Assembly: GCF_963853765.1 (NCBI RefSeq) | Contig: NC_088858.1 | Location: 6,882,001-6,946,000, forward strand | Source of the DNA: Magallana gigas | Lineage: Eukaryota | DNA length: 64,000 nucleotides | Direction of reading: 5' to 3' | In this document: positions 1,646-32,400 of the stretch, one piece after another | Numbering within the stretch: the first letter of the stretch is position 1 | Layout of the letters: each line of letters opens with the position of its first letter | The notes under the pieces: generated by a model | The model's input: the letters and a program-made list of their open reading frames with translations, nothing else | Databases searched by the model: none | What the model was told of the DNA's origin: nothing | Translations under genes and position numbers: made by a program

Positions 1646-4600
1646 GTAATCTTGTCATTTCTTCAACCGAATATTTTACATCTTCAAATCTTTTATTTGA
1701 TAGCTTTAGCCAGTTTATATAAATTTTGAATTTTTATTTATCAATAGTATACTTAATAGCAGTAAGTTCAATTTTCTAACTTTCGATTGCCGCTGAAATA
1801 ACTCTGCTTATTAAAATTGATTTCCCTTTTTATTATTGGTATGAATTTTAAAGGAAAAATTACTCGTTTCCATTTATGATTTAAGTATTTCAGTAAATTA
1901 TGTTTTGTACTTAAATTTATTCATAAGAGTATTGCTGAAATGGCCGTCTGAAATGAAAAGAGTCTTTCAGAAAACATGAATATAAAGCGTGCATAAGATA
2001 AGATAATATTTATTTAAAGTCGGGTTTTACAAACAATAAACATTAGCTCTGAGGAGCTATTTTCCGACTTTATATCATATAACATCATAACAGATCCATT
2101 AAATATGCTATGAAATCGAAAATCGGGCAAAGAAGCTTCCCATATTTAAAAAGTTTTTAAAATGATCATTGAAGCAAAAATATTCATAAATTTAGTTTAC
2201 TAGTATAATTTCAATCCCTATCGATATAATCTAATTGTTTACTAGTACTGATAATATAATAACAATGCCCCAGTAAGACCACTAACAGGTTGAATATTTA
2301 CCGTTTATGACGTAAAACGCTGATAAAGGTAACTTTGGGGAAAAAGGTATTCAGTTGAGCCTTGAAGGAAAAAAAAATACCAGAGTGTTTTAATACTCAT
2401 CAGGTTTATTGTTCTAGCAAAACCAGATCTTACCACTTTTATTAATGACAAGTGCCCAAAATAAATCCCCGCAATAATCTGGACCTAAGTAAATTAATAT
2501 GATTTATTATACATGTACTTGTATATTATTTTGGGATTCGGTAAAATCTAGATTCGTGCGGAATCCAACTTAAAAAATATTTTAAAAAACCCAGATTCGA
2601 CTACTGACTTTCAACTTGGTCACAGAAGAAACTGGTCATTTTATTTGTGGAATGCACGAAGTACTGTATTGTTCAGCATAATGACTTGAACCACTAATTT
2701 TTTCAGTTAGATCTCGACGAGAACCATCATTCTGTAATTATTAATCATTGAAATATTTATGTAATTGAATTATGAAAAAAGATTGAAAACATAAAAGTAT
2801 ATGTTCCAGAAAGAAATAACCTTGTCAAAAGTTGTTTCTGTTTATTATAGTATAGATCAAAGCTACAGGTGCGACAAAATGTAAGTAATGTCAGCTTACA
2901 TATACCGGTATGATGCATGCGAAAAAGTGTCGTAAGTGAAATTATCTCCGCGATATTTCACAACTTTGCAATCAACTCATGACGTCACAAATTACCTTTA
3001 GATTTTCGAGATTCGTGTAAAGGTAAATGGTTAACCAAACATAACAAATAAATGTATTAAGAAAATCAAATCATGGTCAACTACATATTTTTAATAAGAT
3101 TTTTAAAAATTGTTATAAAAATATCACATTTTTTAGGTAAAATATAAATGTTACATAACTAACCAGCTGTATGTATAATTTGGCGAAGACAAGAGGAAAG
3201 TTCCGAATTTATTGGTATAATTTGCAACAATCAGCCCAAAACTGAACATGTCTCTAATGGTCCATGATGTTTAGCACCCAATTTTGTCAGCGGAAATCAT
3301 CATATTGGATACCATAGCAACAGCACAAACATTCTATTGCTTTTGAAATTGTTGTGATGTGCAGACATATTGAAAAGGTTAAAATAAGTCGGATTTTGGC
3401 TTTGTTGATTATGTAAGTAATTCTTGATTATTAATTATCAATTTTATTAAATTCATAATGAATCTATTAAACATAACCTTCAAAAGAAACCATGGAATAT
3501 TTTTTTTCCAAATTTCTCGTTATATTATGTTTGTTTTTAAATATAATTACCAGTACCTGGAATAAATCATTTTAAAGTTAATCGTTTTATAAACTTAAGT
3601 GTTCTGGGTTTCTTTTTCATGGATATGTTTAAAACTTATTTTCCATTATTTTTTTGTTCTTTAGTCAAAGAATTACTAGGATAATTTATTATCATTTGGA
3701 ATTTGTTTAAAAGTCCTTAAAAGAATAAACAAAGTTTCCAAATATGTAATTATGAAGAGGTTATTTAATAAAATAACTTAATAAGATCCAACTTAGAGTC
3801 TTATTCACATTTCTTCGTTTAGAAATTAAAAATCCCGACTTAGGAAAGGATTCGCGCATGATGTTAAGATAGAATCAACATCCACAACATCAAGGTATGT
3901 ATAACTTCTGGTGTTGTTCAGAAAAATACAATTTTAGTCATTTGTCGGTTTATTAAAACAATAAAATGCTTACTTTGCTGATTAATGCGGGATAAGAAGG
4001 CAGCGACATAGCAGAAAAAATACATATTACGGGTTATATATTTTTTCTGCAATAATCACTACCTTCATAAACATTTTATTGTTAATATTCACAATTTTTT
4101 AAAAACAAATTATTGAATTAATAATAAAAAAGTAGTTAAAATTAACTAAATAAACGTTAATGTACATGAGTACGTTATATTAAAGAAATAGCCAAGTCTT
4201 TGTGTATGGGAGTCTGCAATTTCGATTTTCGAGCAGTCCTTGATTTCTCCTTTAAATCCTTTCATTACTTTCCAAATGAAAGCTGATTACTAGTAAATAA
4301 AAACACACCGTGTGGAATTAGCAATGGCACTATTTGGCATATTAAATGAATGTATGACATAAAGTTGGATTATTTAAATGAAACATTTCCTAAAATTTAA
4401 ACTTTTACGCTGTATACGTGTCGTTCTAAAATGGTATACAACGCCTTTGCATTTTGCTAATAAACCGGTTCTAATAAAAAAAAACCGTGTGACACAAAGA
4501 GGTATTCGTATGAAAACTTTATATTTCCGGACAAATAATTCATTATTACTCCAAGTAGAAATTGATTTCTATCTAATTCGTCCCTCAAACGAAAGAAATC

Positions 4601-5235
4601 ATATTTCCATTAGGTTGTCGAAGAACAAACCGGTTAGAACTGGATCGTTTAGAATTCAGCCCTATTAATTTCACTTTTTGCCATGAATCACAATAAGTTT
4701 TCCTAAGCAGTAAAGAAAAAAAATACTCGATAGATGTAAATAATAATTGGTCAGTTTTCATATTATCCTACCTCTATCTTTCTAGAGGTCCGTGTTGCTC
4801 TGTTTTAAATTCGTATTTCGCTTTATGGATTTTTGAGATGGTTGACAGTTTGTTATTGTCATTTTTCATTAAGTTAGAAAGCAAAAGTTCCTAGGTATGG
4901 GACGTCATTGCAAATTACCGTTTATATGTTATTGAATTTACTTGCTTAGTTTTTGCTGAATCTCTGAAAAAATAAAACTTCTCTAATCTGAATAGATGAG
5001 TGGGAATAAACGCCCTTCTGATTCGTCGAAGACGAACATGGCGATGCCCAAGGCCCGAAACATTTACCAGGACGATGACGCAGGAAAGATGGTTTTCTTA
5101 CCGGAAATTGATAACCCAAGCAAACAAACTTCATTTAGTAGAGGTAAATAGTCGTATTACATATAATTCTCAAGAATAATGAGAGTAGGGAAAAAAAACT
5201 GAATAAGAGAAGATAGGTGCAATATTAAAAACGGG

Positions 5236-8047
5236 ATGCGATTCTTCATAGGCATCTGCTGTAACGCGCCACCCCTGACGGATTCGGACAAGAAGATCCA
5301 GCTGATTAAGATGCTGTGTCTCACGGTGTTACCAGTACTAGGAGTGTGGTCCTACAGTGTGTACATGCTCTCGGATACAATCTCACTCAAGAGCGAAAAC
5401 GAGGCGGTACGTAAATACAGATTTATTTATTTTTTGTTAGAATGACAAACGAATAAAAAATTATTTTAACCGTCAATACGGTTTTTGCAAAAATAAATAT
5501 TATATAGTTTTCTTTTTTCGTGGAAAAATTCATATTATCCATGACTTTGACAGACCAGAAAAGCTTTAGTGTACAGCGTAGAACTGGGGAAGTTGGTCCA
5601 CCACTTGCAAAAAGAGAGGGACATGAGTGTTCTGTATCTTAGTGCTCTACGTCCGGAAACCAAAACATTTCTCCTGGCAGAATACATAGCGACCGACAAA
5701 GCGATAACGAGGCTTCCGGTCTGGCCCGGAAACCTAGATAAACTTGACAGAACGGAATTCTCGACTCGCGCCAACTTAGTACAACATCTTAACCGCAGAC
5801 GACAGTCACTGACGCCATCCGAAGTGTACATTCAAGATGAGATCGACTTCTATACTCGAATTATCAAAGTCGTCATCGTATGGCTATACGATTCAATCAA
5901 TGAATCGAAATTTGCTGTCGTCTGGAAAACGCTTGTCGCCTATCAAAAGTTGACGAGTGCAAAGGAAGACGTCGGGGTAGAAAGAGCGCTTGGGACTATG
6001 TTCTATGCCAACGGTGGATTTGAGAACCATTTTTACTATCAGATGTATTATAGTCGAGTACACAACTTTCGTGCTTACTACAAGACGGCTCAGTTGTACT
6101 CGGATCGTGTTCGACTCTTATACTCGTACGTAGTGAGCGAGGCCGGAAACAATCTCACTGACATTATCGATTCTTTCCGGTCAGAAATCTTACACAACGT
6201 AAAAGATGGCAATAACACGTTTCCGGAGATGCAGAAGGCCCGTTGGTGGTTTGACAACATGACCATGTATCTAGACACTTTATTAGACGTACAACAAGAC
6301 TTAGGAGAAGAAATTCTGGCAATTTTGGATACCGTGATCGAAAAAGTCCAGACTGACTTAGCCGTGAGTGCGACCCTTCTAGTGGTGGTTATCCTTATGT
6401 GCCCATTTGTCATTTATATGACGGAATACGTCACTTCCGTTTTCCATAAATATGCACTAACTCTTATTGACAAAACGAAAGAACTAGCCCGAGAAAAGGC
6501 GCGAACCGACTGCCTCATTTACCAGATGATACCTAAACCAATCGCCGACCAGGTCAAACACAGCAAAAACATAAAGCCGGAATACTTCAAGGTGGTAACT
6601 GTCATGGCGTCCGATGTCTGCGGGTTCTACAAAATGTCTTTGGAGTGCTCTGCATTACAAATCGTCGACTTGCTAAACACCCTGTATGAAGCCATCGACA
6701 AGCTATCGGAAACCTACAACATGTACAAGCTAGAAACATTGAATGACTGTTATATGGCCGTGTCAGGTTTGTAAAGCACAAGTTCTGTCTTTCACCTCAT
6801 TTCCAATCACAGAATTATCAGAAGAGTAGATGAAAAGTATCACCTCCTTTTGCAGGTTTACCAGACAGAAATAAGTACCACGTGACGGAGGTCGCAAACT
6901 TTGCACTCCAACTGATTGACTTGATAAGCAAGCGCCAGTTCATTGTGAATGAAGATCGCATCGTTCAAGTGAGAATTGGGATCAACACAGGTATTTCATC
7001 AAGTATTTGAACAATTTTACGTCAAGATCCCTGTAAGACGGTTATTTTCGACACGTGGTCTTCGTTCAAACTTGTTTATTTTTGTTGCATAAAGCAGGGT
7101 TGATAAATCATGTTACTGATGTTTGTTAGATGGTTATTTTTTCAAACCTTTTTAAAACAAACAATTGATTGATAGATTGCATCAATTAGTTTTATTTTAG
7201 GTCATCGTGTTGCAGACATTACAATGTTCTGAAGCCTTTTTGTTACATGTACATGGTGACTAATGACGTCACATCAATGTTTATTTTTAGGTCCCTGTGT
7301 GGCGGGAATTGTCAATACTGTGATGCCTCGTTACTGCGTGGTTGGGGAAACAGTCAACAACGCAGCCAGAATGATGTTTTACAGTACAGGTATTTTTGTA
7401 AGAGACAATCTATCATACGTTTATATCCAAGTTTACATTTACCGGATACTTATCATTTTAACCTTTTTTAGCCAATAGAATCAACATTAGCCACGGGACT
7501 TATACTGCACTAGAGAAGACGGGAAACTACATCTTAAAGAAGAGAAACAAACTGGTTAGTTTTTATGTTCCATCAAATAATATAATAAGTTTCGTTATTG
7601 CATTCAGACACTGAGTTGGTTTTTTTTTTTTTATCAATTTAAAAACAATTTTAGGGCAAAAACACCATGTACTGGCTCATCAAGAAGATAGGCAATGGAA
7701 CCAACGAGAACAAGGACTCCATTATATCATCTATATCATCGGACTCGGAGTCTGATAAATCAGAACCCACTCCTGACCAGAGTAACTCCGCGGAGGAGAG
7801 TCAGCACGAGGACATTCCCTTCCCGTTCCGAGCCCGACTTCCAATGCCAAACTACAACGAAGATGATGATGTACATCTGAGTGCCAGTAAACAAGACATG
7901 TTCGCAGAAACTCAGCCAAAACCAGAAGAAGTAGTGGCGCCAACTCTCACCTTCCAGAAACCGAAGGACGAAAATCTTGCGGACCAGAACGATCTTGCAA
8001 AAGATGCGCAATACAACAATGTGAAAATAGCACTCAACCTGGTATAG
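5236..8047 (+). CDS. NIT-domain receptor-type guanylate cyclase (TM-NIT-TM-coiled coil-cyclase), 6 exons, 697 aa
   Basis: Exons 5236-5406, 5554-6766, 6856-6990, 7291-7389, 7472-7554, 7655-8047; all GT-AG and phase-consistent (2094 nt). NIT signatures [12 protein letters not shown] and [11 protein letters not shown]; hydrophobic segments [20 protein letters not shown] and [21 protein letters not shown]; signalling helix [18 protein letters not shown]; cyclase motifs [60 protein letters not shown]. Confidence 0.9.
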
Positions 8048-8418
8048 AGTAGCACTGTGAATAGAAACCGATCACATTTTGACAAGGAGTCAAAGTTAAC
8101 CAATATGTCATGCAGTAAGACCTAGTCTTTCATCTGTTTCTACATCTTGATGAAAATGGCTTACATGTTGTAATGTTGTTAATTTTATCTATAACCAGAC
8201 ACTTAGAGTTCTTTGATAGACTTCTCTACCAGTGTTAATTATTTTTGTGAAATTTAAAGATGTTTTAATATTTGTTCACTTTTTGTATTAAAACATGCAG
8301 ATATTTCCCCACTCCATGTGTCTGTATTTTAGGTGTGATAGTTGCATGGTGTCAGTGTTTTTCTTTTTCTATCATTTAATTGACAAGGTACAGTCTGTGT
8401 GCACTCTAATTTTGATAA

Positions 8419-8435
8419 TTTATTTCATGAATAAA
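8419..8435. terminator. Back-to-back poly(A) signals: AATAAA on - at 8424-8419 and AATAAA on + at 8430-8435
   Basis: Sequence TTTATT-TCATG-AATAAA between the convergent stop codons at 8047 and 8593. Confidence 0.45.
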
Positions 8436-8592
8436 TAGCTTACATTTTATATCAACAATTGTTTTTCATGACTTATTATACTTATATGTCCCCGTTTGTG
8501 TATTTGGTAAAAAATCAACGATTAGGCTTTTCTGTACAAATAACAAAAGAAACTCCTGAAAATAAACTTGGGTAATATATTTAGTATATCCA

Positions 8593-11500
8593 TCATATCA
8601 TGTTCTCTGTAGTTTCTTTGCTGATAATATCCTGTCCCAGAATCAAAGATTCCCTTACGATTCCCCTGGGAGGGGGCGCTGTGACAGGTACCTGTTTTAC
8701 GTCACTGCCATCCTTTACATCACCCCTGGCAGACGTGGTCACGCCAACATTTGCTTCATTCTTCCTTAATGAATTCTTTGTCTTCTCTAAACCTCTGCTG
8801 TCTCCTGCCGTTGGTTTGATCGGTAATTCTTCTTTCTCGTTTTCGACCTCGGGTTTCGGTCTCGGTTTTCGCCGTCTTCTGCGTCTTCGTGGTTTTCCTA
8901 TTTTCATTACCTTGCCGTGTTTAATGTTTATGGACCTTATTTCTTTCACTTCTTCCAGCAAATATACAAACTCTTGATCAACACAAACGTTCTAAAAGAA
9001 AACCGTGAAAAAGTTATATGTAGCGAGCAGATAAATCTTAAAAATCGTGAAGTTGGAGTAATACCTTTAGGTCCACATTTTCTAGTGCAGTTAATGATTT
9101 GGGATCCTCTATACTTTTCAAAATGTGCAGGGAAGATTCGTTCGTTAAAAGGTTATCGCCAATCTACAAGAAAATGAATGAGCAGCCAAAAAGTATTACA
9201 TGCTTTACACATGCATGTGTATAACAAATAATACAGATAAATAAAGCACATATCATTGAATCGTAAAATCTTTTGTTAATCAGTTTTATGTAGTATAAAG
9301 AATGGAAATGAAGATTTTTGTTATTACCACGAGCGTCTTGAGCGTATCGTTTTCCGTTAGTCCTTTGGCAATGACCCGTATGTCCTCGTCCACCATTCTG
9401 TTGTATGATAGGTCCAGTTCCCGCAGAGTCCGATTTTTCTTCAGTACTAACGCCAGGCCCTGACTCCCCTCCCGTCCAAACCCATTAAAACTGATGTTAA
9501 GACGCTTCAGACCTATATTTTTCTTTTTAAAAAAATTATAAATTAAAAAATAAAAAACAAATAAGGAATAATATAGGTTGTGAAACAAATATATTGACTT
9601 CCGGAGCTATGAATGTTAAGAGCTGGAAATGGGATTGATTGTGACCTTGACACCCTTCGTAAACGCCTCAGCTGACCGTCCATTGATGTGGTTCCAACTG
9701 ATGTCAAAGGACTCCAGTCTGTCATTGTTTTCTACAACATCAACAAACATGTACCACTTTGTAAGGCTCTTTAACATTTCAACACCTCAAAATCACATTA
9801 CTTGGTGAATGTTGATTACCTATGGCTCGGCCAAATTCAATCCCCGCTCGGTCTGCAAAGTGGTTGTTGGATAGAATTACTTCTCTTAAACTTTTGGATT
9901 TCTATGAAAAAATTGGTAAATACAGAAAATCACTTTCCACTGAAATTTTGCACCGTCTCTTATAAAATAAACAACATCAGCATATCTTACCTCAATTAGA
10001 TCGCCAAACAACACGGAATCGTCGTCTTTGAATCCGTTGTCTGTAAAATTCAACATAGGTAAGGATGACTAGAATATACAGTTATCCTTAAAACAGTACT
10101 CTGTGTGCGACTGAAAGCCGTTTACAATGCCTCCTATATACTCACTGCTCAGGTCAAGATATTCAAAGAGGGTGAGGTCCTTCACAGCTTTACACAGAAT
10201 TCTAGCTCCCTCGCTGCCCAAATTATTGTTCGAAAGATTCTGAAAGAAATTACGATAATGTTACTCAAAAAAAAAAATCAAAGATATCAATTCAACAAAA
10301 ACATGAGCATAATGAGACGGCAAGCCAACTTACGACATGGGTGATCGACATGGTCTCCAGACAGGCTTCTGTTAAGTGGTTCAAGCCAAACGGTCCAATA
10401 TCATTGCCTTTAATATCCAGATATACTAAGTTGTGATCGAGCTAAAAATACCACCAAACCAGCTGATCGGTATGTTTTCCATTACTTTGATTTGAAAATT
10501 TGACTTCTAATACAGTATGAAGTACATGTTTATGACGGAGGAGTTTTATGTTCCGTTTTAGTACAGAATTTTAAAATAGGGGGCTTCAATTTTTGTTGGA
10601 TACATGTAGTGGCGTATCTTTTAAGGTCATCATGTACATGTATGGTAATATAACCAGGAATCCAAGAGACAGATCATAGTTGTTGGTCGAAAAAAATTGA
10701 CCTTGACCAGTGAGATATGGCCTCTGATCAAGGTCGTGATCTGTTTACAAGATCATGACATGTAACAGTATATTTACATCTACCAAGTATTATTCCCTCT
10801 ATTTCTTACAGAAACTTATACTTAATTCATAGCTCTATTGAAACAGCCAGACTGAAATTGACACGCCCTGTTTATCGATTGGTCCAGACCTACAACTACC
10901 TAAAGCCCCTGTCACACTGTCACGATTTATACAACGATTGCGTACGAATTACTAAAAGTTAAAAATCGCCATTATTCGCCAGGTCAGTCTTGCGATAATT
11001 CTACAGACGGTGCTTTTTTAAATCTAGTACGACTCGACTACGAAGTCTGCTCGACAATGTACGATGTTTGTGCGATGATAGGACGAGTTGTGGCGATTCA
11101 TGTTCGAATTTCGGCGATTAAGTAATGAATGCTTTGTGATTTTCCTTCGAGCAGGTAAGATGCAAGACAATTTTTATACGATACTCTTACGAATGAGTAC
11201 GACATTGTACGATTGATACACGATATTACCACGAATAAATACGAGTTTTTACGATTATATATTTGGTGTGTTAAATAATAAAGTGATTATTAAACAAATT
11301 AATAATTACATTTTTGCATTAAAAAACTTTCGTGGAATAAATTTTCAATTTCAAGCATACATGTAAGATGAATAATGCAATCAGAGTAATATTCATATAG
11401 ATTATAAAAAATTATAAAAGAAAACACGTACAGGTAGAAGTAAATTTGTGAGTTAAGATTACCAAAAAATACATACCGTGACAATGATTGCAATTGTGAG

Positions 11501-17420: not shown

Positions 17421-20400
17421 TTACACATACCACTCCTTGACATCCTTCTTCTTTCCTGACTTTCCGCCCCCACCACTGTGGTTACCTAGCAATGCTCCAT
17501 TACCCTGCTGTTGTTTCTTTTCTAGAAAAGCAAAGTTCTGACTTTCGTCCACTTTATACGTGCCCTCGTCACGACTCCGAAATTTATACAGTGCTATTAT
17601 TAGAATGATGAGTGCTACTAAAACCCCGCCCACTATGCCTATAATAAGGGCGAGGTTTGGAGTTTGTGTCACTTCCTGTTCCCTGCTGGAGTTCGCAGGG
17701 CGTTGAGGATTATATTCAGTGGAAGGCTTAGAGCCCTCTATGTTAAGCTGTCCCGACTTTGAAGAGTTCCGGTCTGGCTTCATTAAGTTGGTGCTCTCCA
17801 CTTGATTGTCACAGTTCAGTAAATCTTTAGAATAGCAAGGTCCCGTGTCAGTGCTGAAAGTCAAGACAGATTAACCATTAATCATCAATCTACCCCAAAT
17901 ATTTTAATGGAATCTGAAATATTAGTCTTTAGATACAGAGATGATTTTTAAGCATGCTTCTGAGGAAAAAGACATAGTTTATATCAAGTATGGCATTTTG
18001 AATAATTTCTTAAACAAAAACTTTTAAATACTGTTAAGTTAATACCGGTAAGTTAATACATGTATTAATAAATGACTAACCTTTTGGGTGGAGGTTTGGT
18101 GGTTGGTTTGTAAGTGAACTTGACCGTGGTGGAGATGATGTTGTCCGAGAATTCCTCCTGGGCACAATCGTCCTCGTCATCCTCCGGACACCTGATTCCT
18201 CCCTCTCCTGATCCCGCCGGGACTATGATGTCATCCGTTACCCCGTCGTGTGGGGTGGTCTGCTGTATCAGAAAGATGCATGTAGTGCATTACAGGGATA
18301 GGTGAAAGTCTGTTTGTTAAAATTTTTATTGAAGAAGTATTTGAAAAATTATGTATTGTCTTGATATTTTCAGGGGAAAGCAATTCATTTTTTTAAAGAA
18401 TATTCAAGCATCATGCAGTTCAATGAGATAACCTCTGTTGATCTAAATACTAGTATTCCATAATTTATTATACAATCGTTCATTTTTCATAAAATTTTTG
18501 AAATAGATGTTAGTGTAAAAACAAAGCAAACCTAAAAAAAAATATGGAAATAAACTTCCAAATGTGTTTTTTTTTTTTTTAATTTCAAAGAGTTAGAAGA
18601 CAATAAAAGTGTTGGAGAAAGAAAGAGAAAGGTGGGAATAAAATGGTGAAAACAAAAACGTATGGAACATCAGGCAACTAATGTTTCTTAACAGAATACA
18701 TATCATCTAACTAAGCAATCCATTTTTTTTCTTTATCTGAAAAGATGGCATTAATTCTATTTGGGTTAAAGTTATAATTTCAAATCATCCACCAGTTTGC
18801 TACTTTCAATATCCAAGTTTCTCCTCTACACACTGTCATAACATGTTAGTAGTCACTCAGACCTTTCACTAACTGTTTCAGTTATGATGTATTAGTAGGA
18901 ATACTTTATTGCTCCAGATCTTCCACCTATGTGGTTATGATGTATTAGTAGGAATACTTCATTGCGCAAGATCTTCCATCATCTAGTTATGATGTATTAG
19001 TAGGAATACTTCATTGCGCAAGATCTTCCATCATCTAGTTATGATGTATTAGTAGGAATACTTCATTGCGCAAGATCTTCCACCTATTTAGTTATGATGT
19101 ATTAGTAGGTATACTTCATTGCTCAGATCTTCCTCCTACTTAGTTATGACGTAAAAATAGGAAACTAGGAATATTAAGAAGCTAAGATATTACATATACT
19201 TAGTTATGATGTATAAGTAGGAATAATTCATTGCTCAAGATCTTCAATCTATCTAGTTATGATGTATTAGTAGGAATTCTTTATTGCTCAAGATCTTCCA
19301 CCTATTTAGTTATGATGTATTACCGGTAGTAGGATTACTTCATTACTCAGATCTTCCTCCTACTTAGTTATGATGTATTAGTAGGAAACTAGGAATATTA
19401 CAAGGTAAGATCTTCCATCTACTTAGTTATGATGTATTAGTAGGAATACTTCATTGCTCAAGATCTTCAATCTATTTAGTTATGATGTATTAGTAGGAAT
19501 TCTTTATTGCTCAAGATCTTCCACCTATTTAGTTATGATGCATTACTGGTAGTAGGATTACTTCATTACTCAGATCTTCCTCCTACTTAGTTATGATGTA
19601 TTAGTAGGAAACTAGGAATATTACAAGGTAAGATCTTCCATCTACTTAGTTATGATGTATTAGTAGGAATACTTCATATCTCAAGATCTTCCACCTATTA
19701 AGTTATGATGTATTAGTAGTTATACTTCATTGATCATGATCTTCCAGCTATTTAGTGATCATGTATTAATAGGAATACTTCATTGCTCAGGTCTTCCACC
19801 TAATTAGTTTATGATGTATTAGTAGGATTACTTTATTGCTCAAGATCTTCCATCATCTAGTTACGATGTATTAGTAGGAATACTTCATTGCACAAGATCT
19901 TCCATCATCCAGTTATGATGTATTAGTAGGAATACTTCATTGCTCAGATCTTCCTCCTACTTAGTTATGACGTAAAAATAGGAAACTAGGAATATTAAGA
20001 AGCTAAGATCTTACATCTACTTAGTTATGATGTATTAGTAGGAATACTTCATTGCTCAGATTTTCCATCTATTTAGTTATGATGTATAAGTAGGAATACT
20101 TCATTGCTCAGATTTTCCATCTATTTAGTTATGATGTATTAGTAGGAATACTTCATTGCTCAGATTTACCATCTATTTAGTTATGATGTATTAGTAGGTA
20201 TACTTCATTGCTCAGATTTTCCATCTATTTAGTTATGATGTATTAGTAGGAATACTTCATTGCTCAGATCTTCCATCTATTTAGTTATGATGTATTAGTA
20301 GGAATACTTTATTCCCCATGATCCTTTTGCCCAGTTATCATGAGTTAGTAGGGATAATTCATTCCTCATGATGTTTTGCTCCTCCATGTACCTGTTATGA

Positions 20401-23400: not shown

Positions 23401-26400
23401 ATATATATAATAGACATCCTTTGTATAATGTTTCATGAAGATTTGATTTTGATATGATTAAAACTGGGGGCAGATATTTGTACATATCAAGTGTAGTCCT
23501 TTGTACCAAGTTTATAGTACTAGTATAATAAATGTTACTTGTTCATATACATGTATTTAAAAAAATAGCTCACGTACTGCAGTTTTCTAGTCTGGTTTTA
23601 TGTACACACTCTGAGCTAACAACTTGAACAAATAAAAAACATTTGAATCCAAAATATACGCTGGCATTTCATGGCTAAATTATTGTCTTTAAAAAAGACA
23701 GAGACAAGGGTGTTGAAGCCCCTTAACTATTACAGTGGATGGCTCTCGGAGTTTATGGATCCCCAGAGCAACCTTGGTCTATGACTGTGGGTCCTCCCCT
23801 CATGTATATGAGTGCCAGCTATCCGCTGTTTGAACTCGCAGTGTCCACTCAAACTTTCCCCCCCAGCGTTCAGGATGTATTTGATTCCGTGCTGGCTAGT
23901 CTCACAAAAGAGTCAATGTTAATATTCTGTACACAATGACTATTCCCCTTTGAGGGCAATGGTGGGAGTGTTTTATGGTAAGTAAACAGTCCCAATATTT
24001 ACAAAACATCCGACACAAATAATCTAGCTACTCTTAAAAAAATTCAATACAAAAAATACCCCAAAAATACATCTGAATGAATACAAGCATGCATTTAAGC
24101 TTTTAAAACGTAATTGCATTCTCACACATTTCTCAATTTAAAAATATATTATTGAATCTACACAGTAATCAATGTTCAATAAACATATTCAGACATTGTA
24201 TGACCCTGAATTATTGGATGACTGTACAATGATCTATGTTTACAATGAAATCCTGAAAACCAAACAGTATTCATACACACTGTTTGACTTAACATGTGTT
24301 CTATTCTTTCCTGTGTTGATATTCAACACTACTCATGTACATAGATACATGCATATACAAATGATTTTAGTTTTTCATTCACAAGATTTTTAAATTTAGC
24401 TCATAACAAGATCCATGATACAAGCATGTGAAAAAGAAAAAAGAATGACTAGAAATCAGAGAGTACCTAACATCACAGGTTCCTACTTATAGGATCACTA
24501 ATAATTAAAGGGGCATGGTCACCATTTTGGTCAAATTTTATTTTTCTGTTTTTAATATTTACAATGCTTTATGAACGCATTTCTAATGATCACATGAAAT
24601 TTCGTTGCCAGTCGTTGAGTTTTAGGCAAGATACAGGGCTCGCAATTCTTCGTAATGTAAACAGGGCTCGTTCCCTGATTTTGTTTACATAGGTTCAATA
24701 TACCAGTAAAAATCTTTTTTAAACTGATTTGTCTATCCTCTTATTCATTTTAAGCATGAATTAACAGTTCCTAACGATTAATACATTCATTTTGTGTTCA
24801 AAACTAGAATTTTCACTTCAACATTCAAAATGTAAACAAAAGCTTTGTTTACATAGCGAAGAATCGAAAGCTCTGTAACTTGCTTATAACACAACAAATG
24901 ACACTCAAATTTTGGATGCCTTTTTAAAATGCCTTACTGAAGCATTGCAAACACTTAAATCGAAAAATAATTTTTGACCAAAATCATGACCGTGTCCCTT
25001 TAAACTGTTTTACAATTGCACTCATTTTAATTTCATATTATAAATAACTAAGTTTGCCTTGACTTTATCCATTACACATCTTTTAAACATGGTTTATTGG
25101 AAATGTACTTACATAAAAATATGTATACAACAAGAGCACTTCTTTTAGATATTAAAGCCATTGACAATATAAAATAAGTATGCATTATATCCCCAAAGTA
25201 GGTTTTATTGCACTTACTGGTGGGGTCCTTTCTGATGACATCATTGCTGTCGACCTGTAGCGTGGCTGCTGCCCCGTCCCTGGTTACCTTGACAACATGA
25301 TAGTTCCCGTCAGTTACCTTGGTGAAGTGGTCTCCAATAGGAACGGACATCTGTGACCCCATGTTGTAAGACACAAACACGGAGCCATTAATCTGAATGA
25401 AGAAAACAGATGAAAGTGATAAGACACACCTAGGACTGACCATGAAAAAGCACAACCCTGCAGATCACTTGGATTGCTTCCTCTTGCTGTATGCAATCTG
25501 TGTGCCAATTTTGACAACCCTATTTCACACAGTATTGCCTTTAACTCCACACAAAGTGCAGACAGATACACCACTGCATTCAATAAAACCTCAGTCAAAA
25601 GACAGTTATAGTGTCTTCTGATTTTTTAAAATAGCCAGCTTTCTGATCAAGCTTACGATTTCTACTTCCAGGAAGTCCGCTCCTGTCTGACTCTCCACAC
25701 GTAAAAGAGTCACTTGTTTCTCCTGACTGGAGCTCGTCCGGAACCCGAAGGCCAGTCTGTCGCTGGTCCGGCTAGGGAGGGAGTCAGGGGGGTAGTAGTA
25801 GGTAATCAGCCCCGGGGTGGGACCAAATGTGGCTGACATGCTCTCTGAAAAGACAATCACAAATCAGGCTCGAACGAGGAATAAATGATGCAATATACAT
25901 GCAAATGTTGGCGTTTCAATAGATTATTTCAACAGATTATTTCCCATGAGATGTCAAAGTAATTGCTGCACGCAAATTTTCAGCATCAGAAATTAATTCC
26001 TTTCTAGATTATGCATTGCAATAATTTGTTATTCAAATCATGTTGATAGAATTGTTCATTGCTGTTAAAATTTTGTTTTCTATTCCTAAAAAGGAATGAA
26101 TTTCACAAACAATGTAAATCTTGTGTAATGTATAACATGACAAGACACCATCCTACCTTGCATACACCTTGGTCCTGTGTAAGAGGTCATTTTACAGTCA
26201 CACTGGAAACTGTTCCACTGCTCTATACAATACCCTCCATTCATGCAGGAATCTGCACGGCAGCTATTACTGGCACCTTGATCCAGAAAAAACATCACAG
26301 AATACACATAGTTGCAATCAGTGCTTTGCAGTACATGAATAAAGACTGAACAAAAAGACTTCTATGAAGAGAATAAACTTAGCAACAACAGCTCTTTTAT

Positions 26401-29400
26401 GAACTGTTACCTTGACAACCCTCCTCTACACCATAGTAAATCTTCTCTGCTTCTCTGAATAAGTTAGGCCTCCGCCCATTAAAGTCGACAGACGCCATGC
26501 ATCCCTGGAATCCATAAGGTGATGAATACGGAATGTCATTGAACATGGACTTACTGACTCCCCCGACATAAAGGTAACCAGTCAGATCCAGATGCAGCTT
26601 GGTTGACCCCGTGAGGTCACTGATGGTTGGATGTTCATCGTCCACGCGGATCTGGATCTGCTCAAGCCCCGGTCGTTGTACGGACACCAGGTGCCACTGG
26701 TTGTCGTTGAGTCGTTGCTGGATGTTGACCACCACACGCTGTGGGCCCCCGCCCATGTTAAACAGGACGTGGAGATACCCATCCTGTAGCTCTATAGCGA
26801 TGAAATCCGGTCCCTGGCCACCGTTATACAGTAACAAACCATACAACTCAATTGTCTTAAATTGGAAGGAAATGGAAAACTGAGACCTGGCAAGCAGTTT
26901 GGGAAGAGTAACATATGCATCTTTTGACTTGAATGTCACAGTGTCCTTAAGAACTGGAGCATCCGAGTTAAACTGAGCAGTGATATTCAGATTTGGAAGT
27001 GAATTGGTCTTGGCAAGCTGGATAATCTCCTTGTTGTTAAAGTAAAACTGTTGCATAGATCCCACAAAGCTAGGAATTTGGTGGAGATATAAGTCATCCT
27101 TTGGCATGATGCTTCTACCTACCTCCATCTGTAGCAGGTTCATTGACTGGTGCACTCTGGGATATGTATCTGGAAAACAGACCCAATAAAAGTAAACATA
27201 TGAAGCAAGAAGTTTTACAACAAGATAACTTTGTGCAATCAGTTATTACTAACATTTTATTGCATTTATTGGTGAAAAAACCAGCTAGGTCAGTGGGCCA
27301 TTCATTGCTCACCTGAGTTACTGGTTACTGAAACAAAGCAGACCAAATCAATATTTGTGCAATCTGTATGCTTGGATTTGTAAAAATATTATTTTGCTTG
27401 TAATCAAGCTTGTTTTGTTTAGTGCTTTGTCTCTGTTTTATGTCCATTACTAATAAGACAGCATCACTAGTTCTTTTAAATAAAACCTGAAGAAGAGAAA
27501 AGATGGAAACAAAACATGCAGAGGACAGACATCTTTGAACAGAAAATCCCATAACTGTCTCTGACTCAGGCAAGCTCATATACGAACTTTGTCATCTCCA
27601 TCACGAATTTTTAACAACATTCCCATATAAATATGGTTTTTGCACACTCAACAATAAAACCGCCAAACACAATAGAGATAAATAATCTAAAAGTCTATAA
27701 ATAAGCAGTTCTACAATCTCCACCATGCAATAAATCAGTACATACAGAAATGCAATTACCAGAAACAAGAAAATTGCAGATGTGCAATAACAAAGCAGTC
27801 ACAAAAGACCAAATAAATGACAATTTTAATTTCAAATCACTTCTATGATATTGCAAGTCTCCAGAGACATTCAGCACAGAGGTGCACAAGGATGAAGTGA
27901 CTAATGCCAAGTGGGAGTAAGAAAAAAATAGGGATGAAATGAAAAACGCGTGAAAGCAGGGACAATGGAGGGAACCAGGCATAGTGACATTGCCAGGAAG
28001 GCCCGAGGATGAGAAACAAGTATATTTACCAGAAGGCAATGGGCCGGGGGAACCTAGCAACAAGAGTTTTATGTTCATGACCTTCACATAGGAGGAAGAG
28101 AATGCTACTGAAAAATAGAGAAGAATCAATCAATAGAGAGACTGCTGCAGGCCGCTAAGACCGGGTCTAATGTGTTGTGTTCAAATCTTTACATTATTAT
28201 ATTGCCGTTATCTGATTGCTTTACACAGATTGGGTCATACAAAGAGTTCCCTTTTGGTTTTCTGTAATTTTTACGACAAAGATTTAAAATGAGACTTGAA
28301 ATTCGAAACAACGATTTAAAGCGTCTCTATGGGATAAGAATTTTAAAATTCTTAATATCATATGTAGATTTCTAGTACGGTAGATAGAGCTAATATAAGT
28401 GCAATTAATCAAAAGACAGGTGTGATATCTTGAATGTTACCTGCACTAGGGTAATTGTCGTCTATTTTCAGGGTGAGTGTATCCCCTCGCCTTGTCATGT
28501 AAACAGTATGCCAAGCTAGGTCATTTAGTCTCTCTCGGCCAATTGTCATTTGCTGAAAAAGTAAAAGTTAAACACCTAATTTTTATACTGCAACATCAAA
28601 ACACTTAAAAATTGTATTATGTCCTATAAATTTTTGGCTCACTAGTGATACCCCCGCTCTGATGTGAATATGCAAAAAAAGCAAAGTCATCATTTAACAG
28701 GAAGTTGACATCCGATTGAAACAAAAATATATTCAACAATATGGCATGCCAAAACAAATAGTGTGTAAAACTTTCAAGCATCTGCGATAAATAGCTGCTG
28801 AGAAATCTTTGACGAAAATTTGGGCTAAAATTAAACAAAGTCGACATTTAACAGGAAGTTGACACCCGATTGGTACAGAAATATATCCAACGATATGGCA
28901 TGCCTATACAAATATTGTGTAAAAATTTCAAGCATCTGCGATAAATAGTTGCTGAGAATTCTTTGACGGAAATTTGTTTGAAAATTTTGGCAAAAAATAA
29001 ACAAAGTCGTCATTTAACAGGAAGTTGACGTCTGATTGGTACAAAAATACATCCCACGATATGGCATGCCTAAACAAATAGTGTGTTAAAATTTCAAGCA
29101 TCTACGATAAATAGCTGCTGAATAAATCTTTGACGAAAATTTGGTTGAAAATTTTGGCAAAAAATAAACAAAGTTGTCATTTAACAGGAAGTTGACGTCT
29201 GATTGGTACAAAAATATATCCCAGGATATGGCATGCCTATACAAATACTGTGTAAAAATTTCAAGCATCTGTGATAAACAGTTGCTGAGAAATCTTTGAC
29301 GAAAATTTGTTTGAAAATTTTGGTTAAAAAATAAGCAAAGTCATCATTTAACAGGAAGTTAACGTCCGATTGGTACAAAAATATATCCCACGATATGGTA

Positions 29401-32400
29401 TGCCTTAACCAACACTGTGTTAAAATTTCAAGCATCTACGATAAATAGTTGCTGAGATAAATGCGACAGAAATTTTTGTTACAGACGGACAGACAGACGG
29501 ACAGACAGACAGACACACAAGGGTAAAACAGTATTCCCCCTCTCCTTCGGAGCAGGGGTATAAAAATGGGATACAGCAAATAAAAAAACACTACACGTTT
29601 ACTTCAAATTTTGCAAAATTTACAAAAAAAAAGATTTTATACCAAATCCAACTGATCCCTTGATCCTTATATTCCCCTATCTAAGACCCCTAGCTCCTCA
29701 TTGACACTTTGATTCCCATTGACCCCTTGCTCCTCACTCACACTTTGATTCCCATTGACCCCTAGCTCCTCACTGACGCTTTGATTCCCATTGACCCCTA
29801 GCTCCTCACTGAAGCTTTGATTCCCATTGACCCCTAGCTCCTCACTGACGCTTTGATTCCCAATGACCCCTAGCTCCTCACTGACGCTTTGATTCCCAAT
29901 GACCCCTAGCTCCTCACTGACGCTTTGATTCCCATTTACCCCTAGCTCCTCACTGACGCTTTGATTCCCATTGACCCCTAGCTCCTCACTGACGCTTTGA
30001 TTCCCATTGACCCCTAGCTTCTCACTGACGCTTTGATTCCCATTGACCCCTAGCTCCTCACTGATGCTTTGATTCCCATTGACTCCTAGCTTCTCACTGA
30101 CACTTTGATTCCCATCGACCCCTAGCTCCTCACTGACGCTTTGATTCCCATTTACCCCTAGCTCCTCACTGACGCTTTGATTCCCATTGACTCCTAGCTT
30201 CTTACTGACACTTTGATTCCCATTGACCCCTAGCTCCTCACTGATGCTTTGATTCCCATTGACCCCTAGCTCCTCACTGACGTTTTGATTCCCATTGACC
30301 CCTAGCTCCTCACTGACGCTTTGATTCCCATTGACTCCTAGCTTCTTACTGACACTTTGATTCCCATTGACCCCTAGCTCCTCACTGATGCTTTGATTCC
30401 CATTGACCCCTAGCTCCTCACTGACGTTTTGATTCCCATTGACCCCTAGCTCCTCACTGACACTTTGATTCCCATTGACCCCTAGCTCCCAAACTGATCC
30501 CCTGGTTCCTACTGACCCCTAGCTCCCAACTGATCCCGTCATTTGCTCCCCAATAATTCTAAAAATCCCTATTAACTTCTATATCTCCATTGATTTTCAA
30601 ATCTCCTATGACTTCTTAAGATTCCCAGTAACTTCTAGATCCCCACTGATCCCTAGCTCCCTAGTAGTCCTAATCCTCATTAACCTCTAGATCCCGATTG
30701 CTCTTTACATCCATATTGACACTTAGATCCCCACTAAACCCTAGCTCTCCACTAACACAGTTTTCCCACTGATCCCAACTAATTAACCCCTTGCTCTCCA
30801 TTGATCCTTAGATCCCCATTAACACCTAGATCCCAATTGATCTTTAGCTCCCCACTGACTTCTACATCCCACTGCCCCTAACTCCCCGTTGACTTCTTTA
30901 TTCCCACCTCTTTTTGGTTGCTGATGCTGATCTCCAGTTTGAGCTTCCCCCTGTCTAGGTATAGCAGCAGCATGTCCGAGGACTTCTGGGAGGAGGTGAC
31001 CAGAAGAAGACCGGATTCCCGCTCTGTCCGGAACCGCAGTGAAATGTCCTCCACCTCAGTCACTGACTCCTCAGGAAATGCCACTTTCATGTACTGACCA
31101 CCATCAAAATTTAGAGTGGATGCAACTGAATCAAAAAGCCAACAAAACATTTTATAACTAATAGTATACACGGTATATAGTAATGATTTGTGGAAATCTT
31201 TTTTTGCATATTTATTTGCAAACAATTTCATCTTGATCAAAGTGATTTAAAATAGCAAGGAAAAAACAGAGGATTCCTCATATTAATGATATATGTATCT
31301 ATTATTATAAAATCAAGTTATAATTTTCAGGGAAAAGCAAGTCAAAACTGACATTCATATGTAGATAAACATTTTTATGTATGTACCCAATAAAAATGTT
31401 CATACTGACTTGAACATCAATTCACTTGTTGTTGATAAAGGCAAAAATCTTAACCAAAAAAGTATCAACAACAAAGTTCATTGTCTTTGGACATGAAACT
31501 CTGCAATATCCTAAGATTAAATAACTGTCCATGTTTGTAAGCCTTAAGTGTACATTTTACTTCCTGCAGGGAAATCAATATTTTACAGGGATGGAGATTA
31601 GCCTGTTAAACCAATTTCCATATATTTGGAGGATATAAGCAATATACTCCGAGTTTTCCAGAAATGGTGTGCTGCCATTTCTTACTGAAGTCAAATGGAC
31701 TGCATGATGAAATGGCAGCAGATTAGGAATAGACTTAATGGAAGGTATCTGGTTTTCTACAAATGCCCCGACTCATCAACATCCCACCACCATCAGATAT
31801 ACAGTACATCTATCAAATTGCTCAATTGGACAGATAGTACATCGCAGTCTTGATTAATTGCCAAATCTCAGACAAATATTCCCTGTGATGACAATTTGGC
31901 TTTGGATAAGGGGGGCCTGAAAATCCATCTAATGGCAGTGGTAAGGGCATTAAACCAAATAAGTCAGACAAACTGATGCCAGAGCCTTGATTTGATGGTA
32001 AATTCAGCTTACCAATTTGTTGCTTTGTCTTCCTAATGAACACTAAGAAGAGATATTCCTAATATGGTAAGCTCCTGTTTTACAATACATTTGTTGTGGT
32101 AACATGTATATATCATTTTCATGAACTTTGGAAATAAAATTGAGTTGTTTTAGGATACATTTGTTAAGTAACTTGTATATACTGATTACCAGTGTATTCA
32201 TGAACTTAAGCTACCGGAAACAAATTATTGAGTCAAGTGTGGCTACTCATAAAAAGATCAAATAAGTAGTTTGCTATAACTTGAGTTTGATCATTCTCCT
32301 ATGCACTTCTCACATGTTTAATATTTACAATGACAAAAAATGTGACTACTGTTCCGAGAGTAGATGAGTTTTAGTGATTCTATCAATATTTATGCCTACT

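Follow-up and report, generated by a model that had tools for sequence, protein, structure and literature searches.

A transcript-verified Magallana gigas gene for a probable membrane receptor guanylate cyclase with a NIT sensor domain

Gene structure and transcripts

The window (the whole stretch of DNA that was analysed, 64,000 nucleotides) contains on its plus strand an eight-exon gene, with a coding sequence spanning 4996 to 8047 and a 5'UTR exon that ends at 3894 (Table 1). After revision, the coding sequence comprises 2226 nt in seven coding exons, in addition to the one 5'UTR exon, and specifies 741 amino acids. The gene is real, transcribed and very strongly conserved in bivalves. Spliced transcripts were found in at least three RNA runs, with word depth up to 198, and all seven coding variants in the RNA contigs were synonymous.

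The first-pass annotation had proposed a 697-residue model starting at 5236. Its six exons (5236–5406 and the last five coding exons of Table 1) have GT-AG borders and translate without interruption to 697 amino acids, and its stop codon was placed correctly. RNA contigs of 2251–2605 nt from runs X1, X2 and X7 reproduced all five of its introns exactly. The same contigs carried an additional GT..AG joint, for a total of six in the long contigs of three runs. Because this joint removes 5144–5251, the observed mRNA lacks the ATG at 5236, which is intronic, and a start at that position is ruled out by the contigs of all three runs. The reading frame instead extends upstream into the exon at 4996–5143, where an ATG (4996) follows immediately after the acceptor, so the earlier start and protein length were wrong. 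The 5' loose ends of the contigs (38–51 nt before 4994) could be aligned to 3863–3892 with one mismatch, a match of which 0 are expected by chance, and this segment adjoins a GT donor (atcaag followed by gtatgt across the junction).

Other observations at the locus were as follows. A repeat lies at 4744–4887, upstream of the first coding exon; 42 raw reads of run X20 were placed, mostly on this repeat, and are uninformative for expression level or strand. An AATAAA occurs at 8431–8436, 3' of the minimum end of the 3'UTR. No tandem paralogue was found in the window, where tblastn with the model matched only the gene itself. Bacterial contamination or recent transfer is ruled out by seven spliceosomal GT-AG introns, by spliced transcripts of the polyadenylated type and by relatives that are all metazoan.

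Table 1. Positions of the NIT-GC gene features in the window, with the basis of each call
Feature	Positions	Strand	Remarks and basis
Non-coding 5'UTR exon	3844..3894	+	3' end set by GT donor at 3895; 5' end is a minimum; RNA loose ends
Coding exon 1	4996..5143	+	ATG 4996; 49 codons and first base of Gly50 codon; predicted cytosolic N-terminal segment; RNA contigs (X1, X2, X7) cover 4994/5017–5141, joined to 5250; in-frame ORF, AG acceptor, GT donor
Intron containing the start proposed earlier (5236)	5144..5251	+	Joint 5141>5250, GT..AG (cut +2), one long contig per run, three runs
Coding exon 2	5252..5406	+	Conserved juxtamembrane motif G-I-C-C-x-x-P-L-T-D-x-x-K-K; predicted TM1, residues ~67–89, window 5302–5370; hydropathy, homologue alignment, RNA joints
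Coding exon 3 (large)	5554..6766	+	NIT 5590–6315; predicted TM2 6358–6420; signalling helix ~6460–6552; first third of cyclase from 6577; Pfam NIT, HNOBA tail and Guanylate_cyc 3–65, hydropathy, AF2 model
Q120-K-E-R123, first arginine motif (Q-x-x-R), putative anion site	5608..5619	+	Aligns with NasR Q-C-E-R
G242-V-E-R245, second arginine motif (G-x-x-R), putative anion site	5974..5985	+	Aligns with NasR G-Q-E-R-A-L-G
Coding exon 4	6856..6990	+	Cyclase, profile positions 68–108; Pfam, RNA joints
Coding exon 5	7291..7389	+	Cyclase catalytic loop with R564, C566, N573, R577; Pfam, alignment with GC-C 8FX4 and CYG12 3ET6, RNA joints
Coding exon 6	7472..7554	+	C-terminal strands of cyclase; RNA joints, homologue alignment
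Last coding exon	7655..8047	+	Shortened beta7-beta8 hairpin G-K-N-T-M-Y-W-L, then acidic Ser-rich tail of ~120 aa; stop 8045–8047; translation, alignment, RNA contigs
3'UTR, minimum extent	8048..8386	+	X2 contig reaches 8386, X7 contig 8314

Domain architecture and topology

The first-pass annotation had described a NIT domain joined to a class III cyclase and had staked its reading in part on a match to PF08376. In the Pfam search the NIT profile was matched over positions 1–238 of 239 (E 4.7e-29; 102.9 bits against a cut-off of 24.9), and both NIT motifs quoted by the annotation are present in the translation. Guanylate_cyc (PF00211) was matched contiguously across three exons (profile positions 3–65, 68–108 and 110–137). 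The only other Pfam match was to the C-terminal coil of HNOBA, over the last 32 profile positions (185–215 of 216); this coiled coil is common to all guanylate cyclases. A haem sensor like that of soluble guanylate cyclase is ruled out, as the Pfam search returned no HNOB (H-NOX haem domain) match and the HNOBA match is confined to the coiled coil. Neither a kinase-homology domain nor an ANF-receptor-type extracellular domain was matched by Pfam in the protein.

Two hydrophobic helices only, flanking the sensor as the earlier reading had it, were called with Kyte-Doolittle 19-residue windows above 1.5, which is a hydropathy scan and not a dedicated transmembrane predictor. They lie at residues ~65–89 and 365–398 (20–45 and 321–354 in the 697-residue model). 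TM2 is separated from the cyclase by only ~45 residues, the signalling helix, in agreement with the earlier statement that a kinase-homology domain is lacking. The predicted layout is thus a cytosolic N-terminus of ~65 residues, TM1, an extracytoplasmic NIT domain of ~270 residues, TM2, the signalling helix, the cyclase and an acidic tail. Because the cyclase that follows TM2 would be cytosolic, the NIT domain is expected to lie outside; it carries four N-x-S/T sequons, two of which are widely conserved among homologues. On balance we favour, with moderate confidence, the reading of the 741-residue protein as a type-II-like membrane receptor guanylate cyclase of the animal NIT-GC family, arranged as TM-NIT-TM-signalling helix-cyclase and presumably acting as a dimer.

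Relatives and selection

The nearest relatives of the protein were all from bivalves, as suits the annotation's description of an animal NIT-domain guanylate cyclase in a bivalve. The phylogenetic tree was built without an outgroup and without Platynereis or Trichoplax sequences, so that orthology to NIT-GC1 or NIT-GC2 is outside its scope; in it, the protein nests among mollusc, nemertean and echinoderm proteins that combine NIT and cyclase domains. Its sister is Pinctada imbricata FSP39_016564 (P0002, locus L001), with support of 100/100. Two other genomes show conserved exon borders. For the first coding exon, tblastn and blastn searches reaching 6 kb upstream gave no match in the P. imbricata locus.

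Across the animal kingdom NIT-GCs are already on record, and molluscs are among the groups richest in them (Moroz et al. 2020, PMC7400543). The presence of the family in molluscs is therefore not new, nor is this a new kind of system. That study lists molluscs as carriers only and describes no bivalve gene. What the first-pass annotation stated on placozoan and Platynereis NIT-GCs agrees with Moroz et al. 2020 and Jokura et al. Its statement that a characterised bivalve member is not known stands insofar as no paper characterising a bivalve NIT-GC was found in the literature searched, and was overstated insofar as public databases already contain automatically annotated homologues from Pinctada, Mizuhopecten, Argopecten, Pecten, Mytilus, Ruditapes, Mya and Tegillarca.

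Purifying selection on the gene is extreme. Compared with a related contig (L002), amino-acid identity was 99.3% at a nucleotide identity of 84%. Over exon 3, three differences were seen in 404 amino acids, none of them within the 268 residues of the NIT domain, with half of the four-fold sites different (dN 0.009; omega ~0.004–0.01). Against P. imbricata, amino-acid identity over the large exon was 88%, and 74% of four-fold sites differed. Because silent sites are saturated at this distance, dN/dS is not estimable and pN/pS is given instead (0.07–0.14). The sensor domain thus appears to be under near-absolute constraint, which is what a receptor would be expected to show if its ligand were fixed, small and inorganic.

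The NIT sensor and its putative ligand

An AF2 model of the NIT region (pLDDT 84.8, pTM 0.84) was all-helical, with nine helices. When the model was used as a fold query, the two NasR chains 4akk_A and 4akk_B were the sole PDB matches with E <0.001 (E 7e-6, TMq 0.78–0.79, ~270 columns). The domain is accordingly modelled as two four-helix bundles in one chain, of the NasR type. In sequence searches of the PDB, the single sequence gave no more than a marginal match to NasR (E 0.015), and the profile matched 4AKK only (E 0.002). The asymmetric nitrate site of NasR and its Q-x-x-R and G-x-x-R arginine motifs have been defined previously (PMC8199190). In a comparison of 16 homologues from molluscs, nemerteans and echinoderms, the Q, E and R of Q120-K-E-R123 and the G, E and R of G242-V-E-R245 were invariant, and the pair probably corresponds to the NasR site, forming a putative anion site. 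As NasR is matched only weakly at the sequence level (E 0.002–0.015), transfer of the binding site rests on the two short motifs together with the fold.

The ligand may be nitrate, nitrite, NO or another molecule, and the protein may sense ambient nitrogen oxides. The name of the domain is not proof of specificity, because the NIT ligand-binding domain of Pseudomonas aeruginosa PA4520 binds neither nitrate nor nitrite (PMC6381276). In the same study, NIT-containing chemoreceptors of other pseudomonads mediated no nitrate taxis, NarX and NarQ were noted to accept sulfite as well, and NIT was proposed to be a superfamily with subfamilies that differ in specificity. It is possible, if on the unlikely side, that the protein is a genuine NIT-GC that senses a ligand other than a nitrogen oxyanion, such as another small anion or a metabolite, and that the bacterial label is misleading for this clade; identity to NasR of only ~20% is consistent with such a shift. 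Set against this are the invariance of both NasR-site arginine motifs across three phyla, the NIT-dependent response of an annelid relative to an NO donor, and the near-absolute conservation of the ectodomain, which fits a chemically fixed, simple ligand.

That annelid relative, Platynereis NIT-GC1, is to our knowledge the only NIT-GC to have been tested functionally. It produces cGMP upon addition of an NO donor, and does so only when the NIT domain is present (Jokura et al., eLife RP91258; 10.1101/2023.08.02.551600). Together with NIT-GC2 it acts in ciliary photoreceptor cells, downstream of NOS-expressing interneurons (10.1101/2023.08.02.551600). The bivalve protein could by analogy be a receptor for NO itself, serving endogenous nitrergic signalling in neurons or ciliated sensory cells with no role in seawater chemistry, and its gene adjoins a neurexin gene, although adjacency is no evidence of co-expression. 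We consider this unlikely. The NIT domain contains no cysteine, which excludes S-nitrosylation within the domain, and it shows no evident haem or metal site at which NO could bind directly. Moreover, the Platynereis assay does not distinguish NO from nitrite or nitrate, and its authors cannot exclude one of these ions as the true ligand (10.1101/2023.08.02.551600). If NO were sensed through its oxidation product, this reading would overlap with the one favoured here.

A bolder proposal is that the ectodomain is devoted to sensing nitrite or nitrate dissolved in seawater or in the mantle fluid, in addition to endogenous NO. It is suggested by an ectodomain that is frozen (0 changes in 268 residues) and predicted to face outward on a filter feeder, and we regard it as decidedly doubtful. 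If true, it would link ambient nitrogen load to physiology under the control of cGMP, such as ciliary beating, valve behaviour and larval settlement.

The cyclase domain

With the family profile, the best PDB matches were GC-A (9BCV, E 6e-100) and GC-C. Residues D455, E495 and D499 align with their GC-A counterparts, and R564, C566, N573 and R577 align with the M-P-R-Y-C-L-F-G-D-T-V-N-T-A-S-R-M segment of GC-C (8FX4) and CYG12 (3ET6). The roles of these catalytic residues in class III cyclases are well established. Metal-binding, guanine-specifying and transition-state residues are all present, and by alignment the domain appears to be a class III cyclase with a complete catalytic and guanine-specifying set. 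An adenylate cyclase is ruled out by the Glu/Cys pair found in place of Lys/Asp.

Several features of the domain are unusual. The beta7-beta8 hairpin is ~5 residues shorter than the family consensus, and the surroundings of the catalytic loop read C-V-V-G-E for C-L-F-G-D and M-M-F for M-E-S. The cyclase half has a protein-level rate of evolution about double that of the NIT half (pN against P. imbricata of 0.12–0.15 and 0.065, respectively), and full catalytic competence is therefore not certain. A pectinid subclade of the family has lost the guanine-specifying Glu and Cys, which suggests non-equivalent subunits in the family, and P. imbricata has another NIT-GC paralogue (P0017). From these observations it could be argued that the cyclase is weakened, or that the protein is a regulatory partner which heterodimerises with another NIT-GC paralogue and makes little cGMP alone. 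We judge this very unlikely: all eight residues for metal binding, base recognition and transition-state stabilisation occur in one chain, and the cyclase part still has a low pN/pS (0.12–0.14). An untranslated pseudogene or annotation artefact, for which nothing speaks except the wrong start codon of the first model, is refuted by the intact 741-codon frame, the spliced RNA contigs of at least three runs, an omega of ~0.01 or lower and the exon borders kept in two other genomes.

Proposed mechanism and significance

Under the favoured reading of a membrane receptor NIT-GC, a small planar nitrogen-oxide oxyanion (nitrite or nitrate, possibly made locally from NO) would bind between R123 of the Q-x-x-R motif and R245 of the G-x-x-R motif, which as in NasR would sit at the interface of the two bundles. 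Displacement would then pass through the last NIT helix, which is predicted to run straight into TM2, and on to the signalling helix. Re-orientation of the cyclase homodimer would in turn alter cGMP synthesis, upward or downward. Because there is no kinase-homology domain, coupling is proposed to be direct and free of the control by ATP and phosphorylation that natriuretic-peptide receptors have.

NIT-GCs are recently recognised and poorly understood, and through them animals may read nitric-oxide chemistry without the haem-based soluble guanylate cyclase. The locus described here supplies a transcript-verified bivalve gene model where public ortholog annotation looks N-terminally truncated. 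It also indicates that the NasR-type arginine pair does not vary across three phyla and that the sensor domain is under near-absolute constraint. The gene is a reasonable choice for testing by ligand-binding and cGMP assays.

Comparison with known systems

Among solved structures, GC-A/NPR1 (9BCV) and GC-C (8FX4) have the closest cyclase and signalling-helix sequences and identical catalytic residues. Unlike the bivalve protein, both carry a periplasmic-binding-protein-type ligand domain, a single TM and a kinase-homology domain. For the sensor, the nearest counterpart is the NIT domain of Klebsiella oxytoca NasR (4AKK), with which it shares the predicted double four-helix-bundle fold (TMq 0.78) and the Q-x-x-R and G-x-x-R pair at an identity of ~20%. 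NasR, however, works in the cytoplasm as a soluble one-component regulator with RNA-binding output through ANTAR, whereas the bivalve domain is predicted to lie between two TM helices and to drive a cyclase.

The NIT-GCs of Trichoplax and Hoilungia (PMC7400543) likewise have NIT between two TM helices, a C-terminal ANPR-type cyclase and the two conserved bundle-interface arginines, and are placozoan paralogues. Platynereis dumerilii NIT-GC1, a member of the membrane-GC group, has in common with the bivalve protein a NIT domain, a transmembrane region and a conserved cyclase. It comes from another phylum, and the shortened beta7-beta8 hairpin and long acidic tail belong to the bivalve protein. 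P. imbricata FSP39_016564 shares with it the exon borders, the shortened hairpin and 88% identity over the large exon; its introns are not alignable, and its database entry begins at an internal Met within TM1 and lacks the N-terminus.

Gene Model and Transcripts

The region 4600–8900 was compared with contigs from three RNA-type runs and with the raw reads of one run. Contigs of 2251, 2605, and 2546 nt, carrying two organism labels and drawn from three studies, were found for the gene encoding the guanylate cyclase with a NIT domain (NIT-GC). The first-pass annotation had proposed six plus-strand exons (5236–8047), and these have GT-AG borders throughout and an open frame of 697 aa; its five introns, all GT..AG, are skipped precisely at the predicted sites within single RNA contigs. 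Its start codon, ATG at 5236, did not stand, because a sixth splice joint removes 5144–5251 and the ATG is therefore intronic. An in-frame exon lies upstream, with ATG 4996 immediately after an acceptor AG, and the revised coding sequence comprises seven exons, 2226 nt and 741 aa, the numbering used below. The contigs extend 38–51 nt beyond 4994; this extra stretch matches 3863–3892, just before a GT donor at 3895, and the gene's first exon is thus untranslated. In the RNA contigs the 3'UTR extends to 8386 at minimum, and AATAAA is found at 8431. Within intron 1, the stretch 4744–4887 showed an RNA word depth of 44–108 in all runs, with many differing loose ends on both sides, and behaves like an interspersed repeat transcribed at many other places.

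The 5143/5252 junction encodes S-R-G-I-C-C-x-x-P-L-T-D, which in alignment fits the G-[RK]-G-I-C-R-x-x-P-L-[ST] preceding the first hydrophobic helix (TM1) in other bivalve, gastropod, nemertean, and echinoderm homologues. Residues 50–66 (5252–5300), directly before TM1, carry the motif G-x-C-[RC]-x-x-P-L-[ST]-x-x-G/D-K outside every Pfam model. This predicted cytosolic motif is kept from echinoderms to molluscs (homologues P0013, P0020, P0039, P0047, and P0066–P0070) and might serve in acylation or in targeting.

Most of the remaining window is filled by a minus-strand neurexin gene (17421–52320), which runs convergently toward the NIT-GC gene; nothing seen connects the two functionally. Run X7 also has a 1033-nt RNA contig of its own (depth 8.7) over 8472–8900, shortly beyond the NIT-GC 3' end; it may represent either the distal part of the neurexin 3'UTR or a different transcript. 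No Pfam match was found for a 122-aa minus-strand ORF at 8593–8961. GC skew is strongly negative (−0.22 to −0.29) over 30001–34000, where G+C is raised relative to the rest of the window.

Features of the window and aligned residues of the 741-aa NIT-GC
Feature	Position	Strand	Basis
Coding exon 1	4996–5143	+	RNA contigs, frame
Coding exon 2	5252–5406	+	RNA contigs, frame
Coding exon 3 (large)	5554–6766	+	RNA contigs, frame
Coding exon 4	6856–6990	+	RNA contigs, frame
Coding exon 5	7291–7389	+	RNA contigs, frame
Coding exon 6	7472–7554	+	RNA contigs, frame
Coding exon 7	7655–8047	+	RNA contigs, frame
Neurexin cytoplasmic tail exon (Syndecan/neurexin-type)	17421–17864	−	
Neurexin Laminin-G exon	26397–27155	−	
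Neurexin Laminin-G + EGF exon	33595–34452	−	
Neurexin Laminin-G exon	51556–52320	−	
Metal-binding aspartates	D455, D499		Alignment
Guanine-specifying pair	E495, C566		Alignment
Phosphate or transition-state residues	R564, N573, R577		Alignment

Domain Architecture and Catalytic Residues

The architecture read by the first-pass annotation was borne out in each part. The NIT domain (PF08376) was recovered in the large exon, which holds both motifs quoted at the time, at 102.9 bits (E 4.7e-29; curated cut-off 24.9 bits) over profile positions 1–238 of 239. Guanylate_cyc (PF00211) matched in register over three exons (profile 3–65, 68–108, and 110–137). A hydropathy scan gave exactly two strong stretches, one either side of the NIT domain, and the Pfam search returned no kinase match, with only ~45 residues separating the second helix (TM2) from the cyclase. 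The sole further Pfam match was to the final 32 positions of HNOBA, whose C-terminal coiled coil precedes the catalytic domains of all animal guanylate cyclases. Chance cannot account for these resemblances or for the architecture, and membership of the NIT-GC family is virtually certain. A cyclase that follows TM2 has to be cytosolic, which predicts an extracytoplasmic NIT domain.

The cyclase was aligned residue by residue with GC-A, GC-C, and the homodimeric Chlamydomonas enzyme. A lysine, K613, also lies in the hairpin usually reading K-G-K-G. The roles given to the aligned positions are those established for class III cyclases. As the full residue set sits in one chain, a homodimer with two active sites would be expected. 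The beta7-beta8 hairpin is ~5 residues shorter than the family consensus R-G-x4-K-G-K-G-x-M-x-T-Y-W-L, and several usually conserved residues neighbouring the catalytic loop differ; both features are common to the Pinctada imbricata ortholog.

Relatives and Selection

The large exon, used as a database query, retrieved 85 proteins, nearly all with NIT and Guanylate_cyc. The best matches were bivalve, led by P. imbricata FSP39_016564 (88%), with Mizuhopecten, Argopecten, Pecten, Ylistrum, Tegillarca, Mytilus, Ruditapes, and Mya proteins at 42–59%, followed by gastropods, nemerteans, and echinoderms. In a maximum-likelihood tree the window and P. imbricata proteins are sisters (100/100) within a pteriomorph-bivalve group; a distant second P. 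imbricata paralogue falls elsewhere, and no second copy was found within the window. Against solved structures, the family profile matched GC-A (9BCV, E 6e-100) and GC-C best over cyclase and signalling helix, in agreement with the published derivation of NIT-GCs from ANPR-type membrane cyclases (PMC7400543).

Public FSP39_016564 (VSWD01000009.1, gene 6001–10350 of the extracted locus) begins at a Met within TM1. The conserved I-C-C-x-x-P-P-L-T-D segment is encoded at 5932–6000, just 5' of that start, and the annotation is probably N-terminally truncated; a search of 6 kb did not locate the first coding exon. In a scallop subclade (P0021, P0022, P0024, and P0026, from Mizuhopecten, Ylistrum, Argopecten, and Pecten), the Glu that specifies guanine is replaced by Gln, and the Cys by Ser, Leu, or Met; catalysis by these proteins may be changed, or they may serve as regulatory subunits.

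Between the window and the P. imbricata locus only exons could be aligned, with 88% protein identity in the large exon and 74% of four-fold sites differing, which is full saturation. The pN/pS ratio was 0.07 for the NIT part and 0.12–0.14 for the TM2-to-cyclase part and next exon. A 2-kb environmental-assembly contig (ERZ27292762 k141_112450, 127–1338) encodes the large exon at 99.3% amino-acid and 84% nucleotide identity, with the same splice borders and unrelated, unalignable flanks; it derives from a related species or else represents an old paralogue. Over 404 codons, 16% of nucleotides and 50% of four-fold sites differ, with three amino-acid differences, none in the NIT domain (dN 0.009; omega ~0.004 by Nei-Gojobori or ~0.01 by four-fold-site distance). 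All seven coding variants in the RNA contigs are synonymous. Judged from these sequence comparisons, the gene is functional and its sensor domain under near-absolute constraint, which would suit a receptor whose small ligand is chemically fixed better than one whose peptide ligand co-evolves.

NIT Sensor and Proposed Mechanism

A profile of 16 NIT regions matched a single PDB entry, NasR (4AKK, E 0.002). The AlphaFold2 model of residues 102–369 is confident and all-helical (pLDDT 84.8, pTM 0.84), and its significant Foldseek matches were confined to two chains, A and B of NasR (E 7e-6, TMq 0.78, ~270 columns), followed by de novo helical bundles at E >0.06. Q120-K-E-R123 aligns on NasR Q-C-E-R and G242-V-E-R245 on G-Q-E-R. 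In NarX, NarQ, and McpN nitrate is bound through a G-x-x-R motif, both arginines of which are kept in NasR, in an asymmetric site where glutamine replaces one glycine (PMC8199190); as aligned, the window motifs show exactly this Q/G-x-x-R pattern. All 16 aligned homologues keep the Q, E, R of the first motif and the G, E, R of the second without change. The NIT region has no cysteine, which excludes S-nitrosylation inside it. Two of the four N-x-S/T sequons in the region occupy positions that are widely conserved.

In the mechanism we marginally favour, the ligand would be nitrite or nitrate, a planar nitrogen oxyanion possibly derived from NO, bound between R123 and R245 at the two-bundle interface. 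The last NIT helix (model residues 226–267), continuous with TM2, would relay movement through the 45-residue signalling helix to the cyclase dimer, altering cGMP output. Functional support comes solely from a relative, Platynereis NIT-GC1, where cGMP rises when SNAP, an NO donor, is added but shows no rise once the NIT domain is deleted, in an assay that, according to its authors, does not distinguish NO from nitrite or nitrate (10.1101/2023.08.02.551600). The main counter-evidence is the NIT ligand-binding domain of Pseudomonas aeruginosa PA4520, which bound neither nitrate nor nitrite; the authors of that study accordingly regard NIT as a mixed-specificity superfamily (PMC6381276).

Comparison with Known Systems

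NIT-GCs have been described in placozoans by Moroz et al. (2020, PMC7400543), who also name molluscs as carriers, and in lophotrochozoans, with two annelid members characterised (Jokura et al., 10.1101/2023.08.02.551600), and bivalve homologues are present in NCBI and UniRef under automatic names; the window locus is therefore a further member of a known family. No paper on a bivalve NIT-GC was found in the literature library searched. What is new is a transcript-verified bivalve model with a corrected start, the invariance of the NasR-type Q/G-x-x-R pairing across phyla, and the extreme constraint on the predicted ectodomain. Whereas GC-A is controlled by ATP and phosphorylation, the window NIT-GC has no kinase-homology domain, and such control is thus not expected. 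With NasR it appears to share the fold and the Q/G-x-x-R pair, as modelled and aligned.
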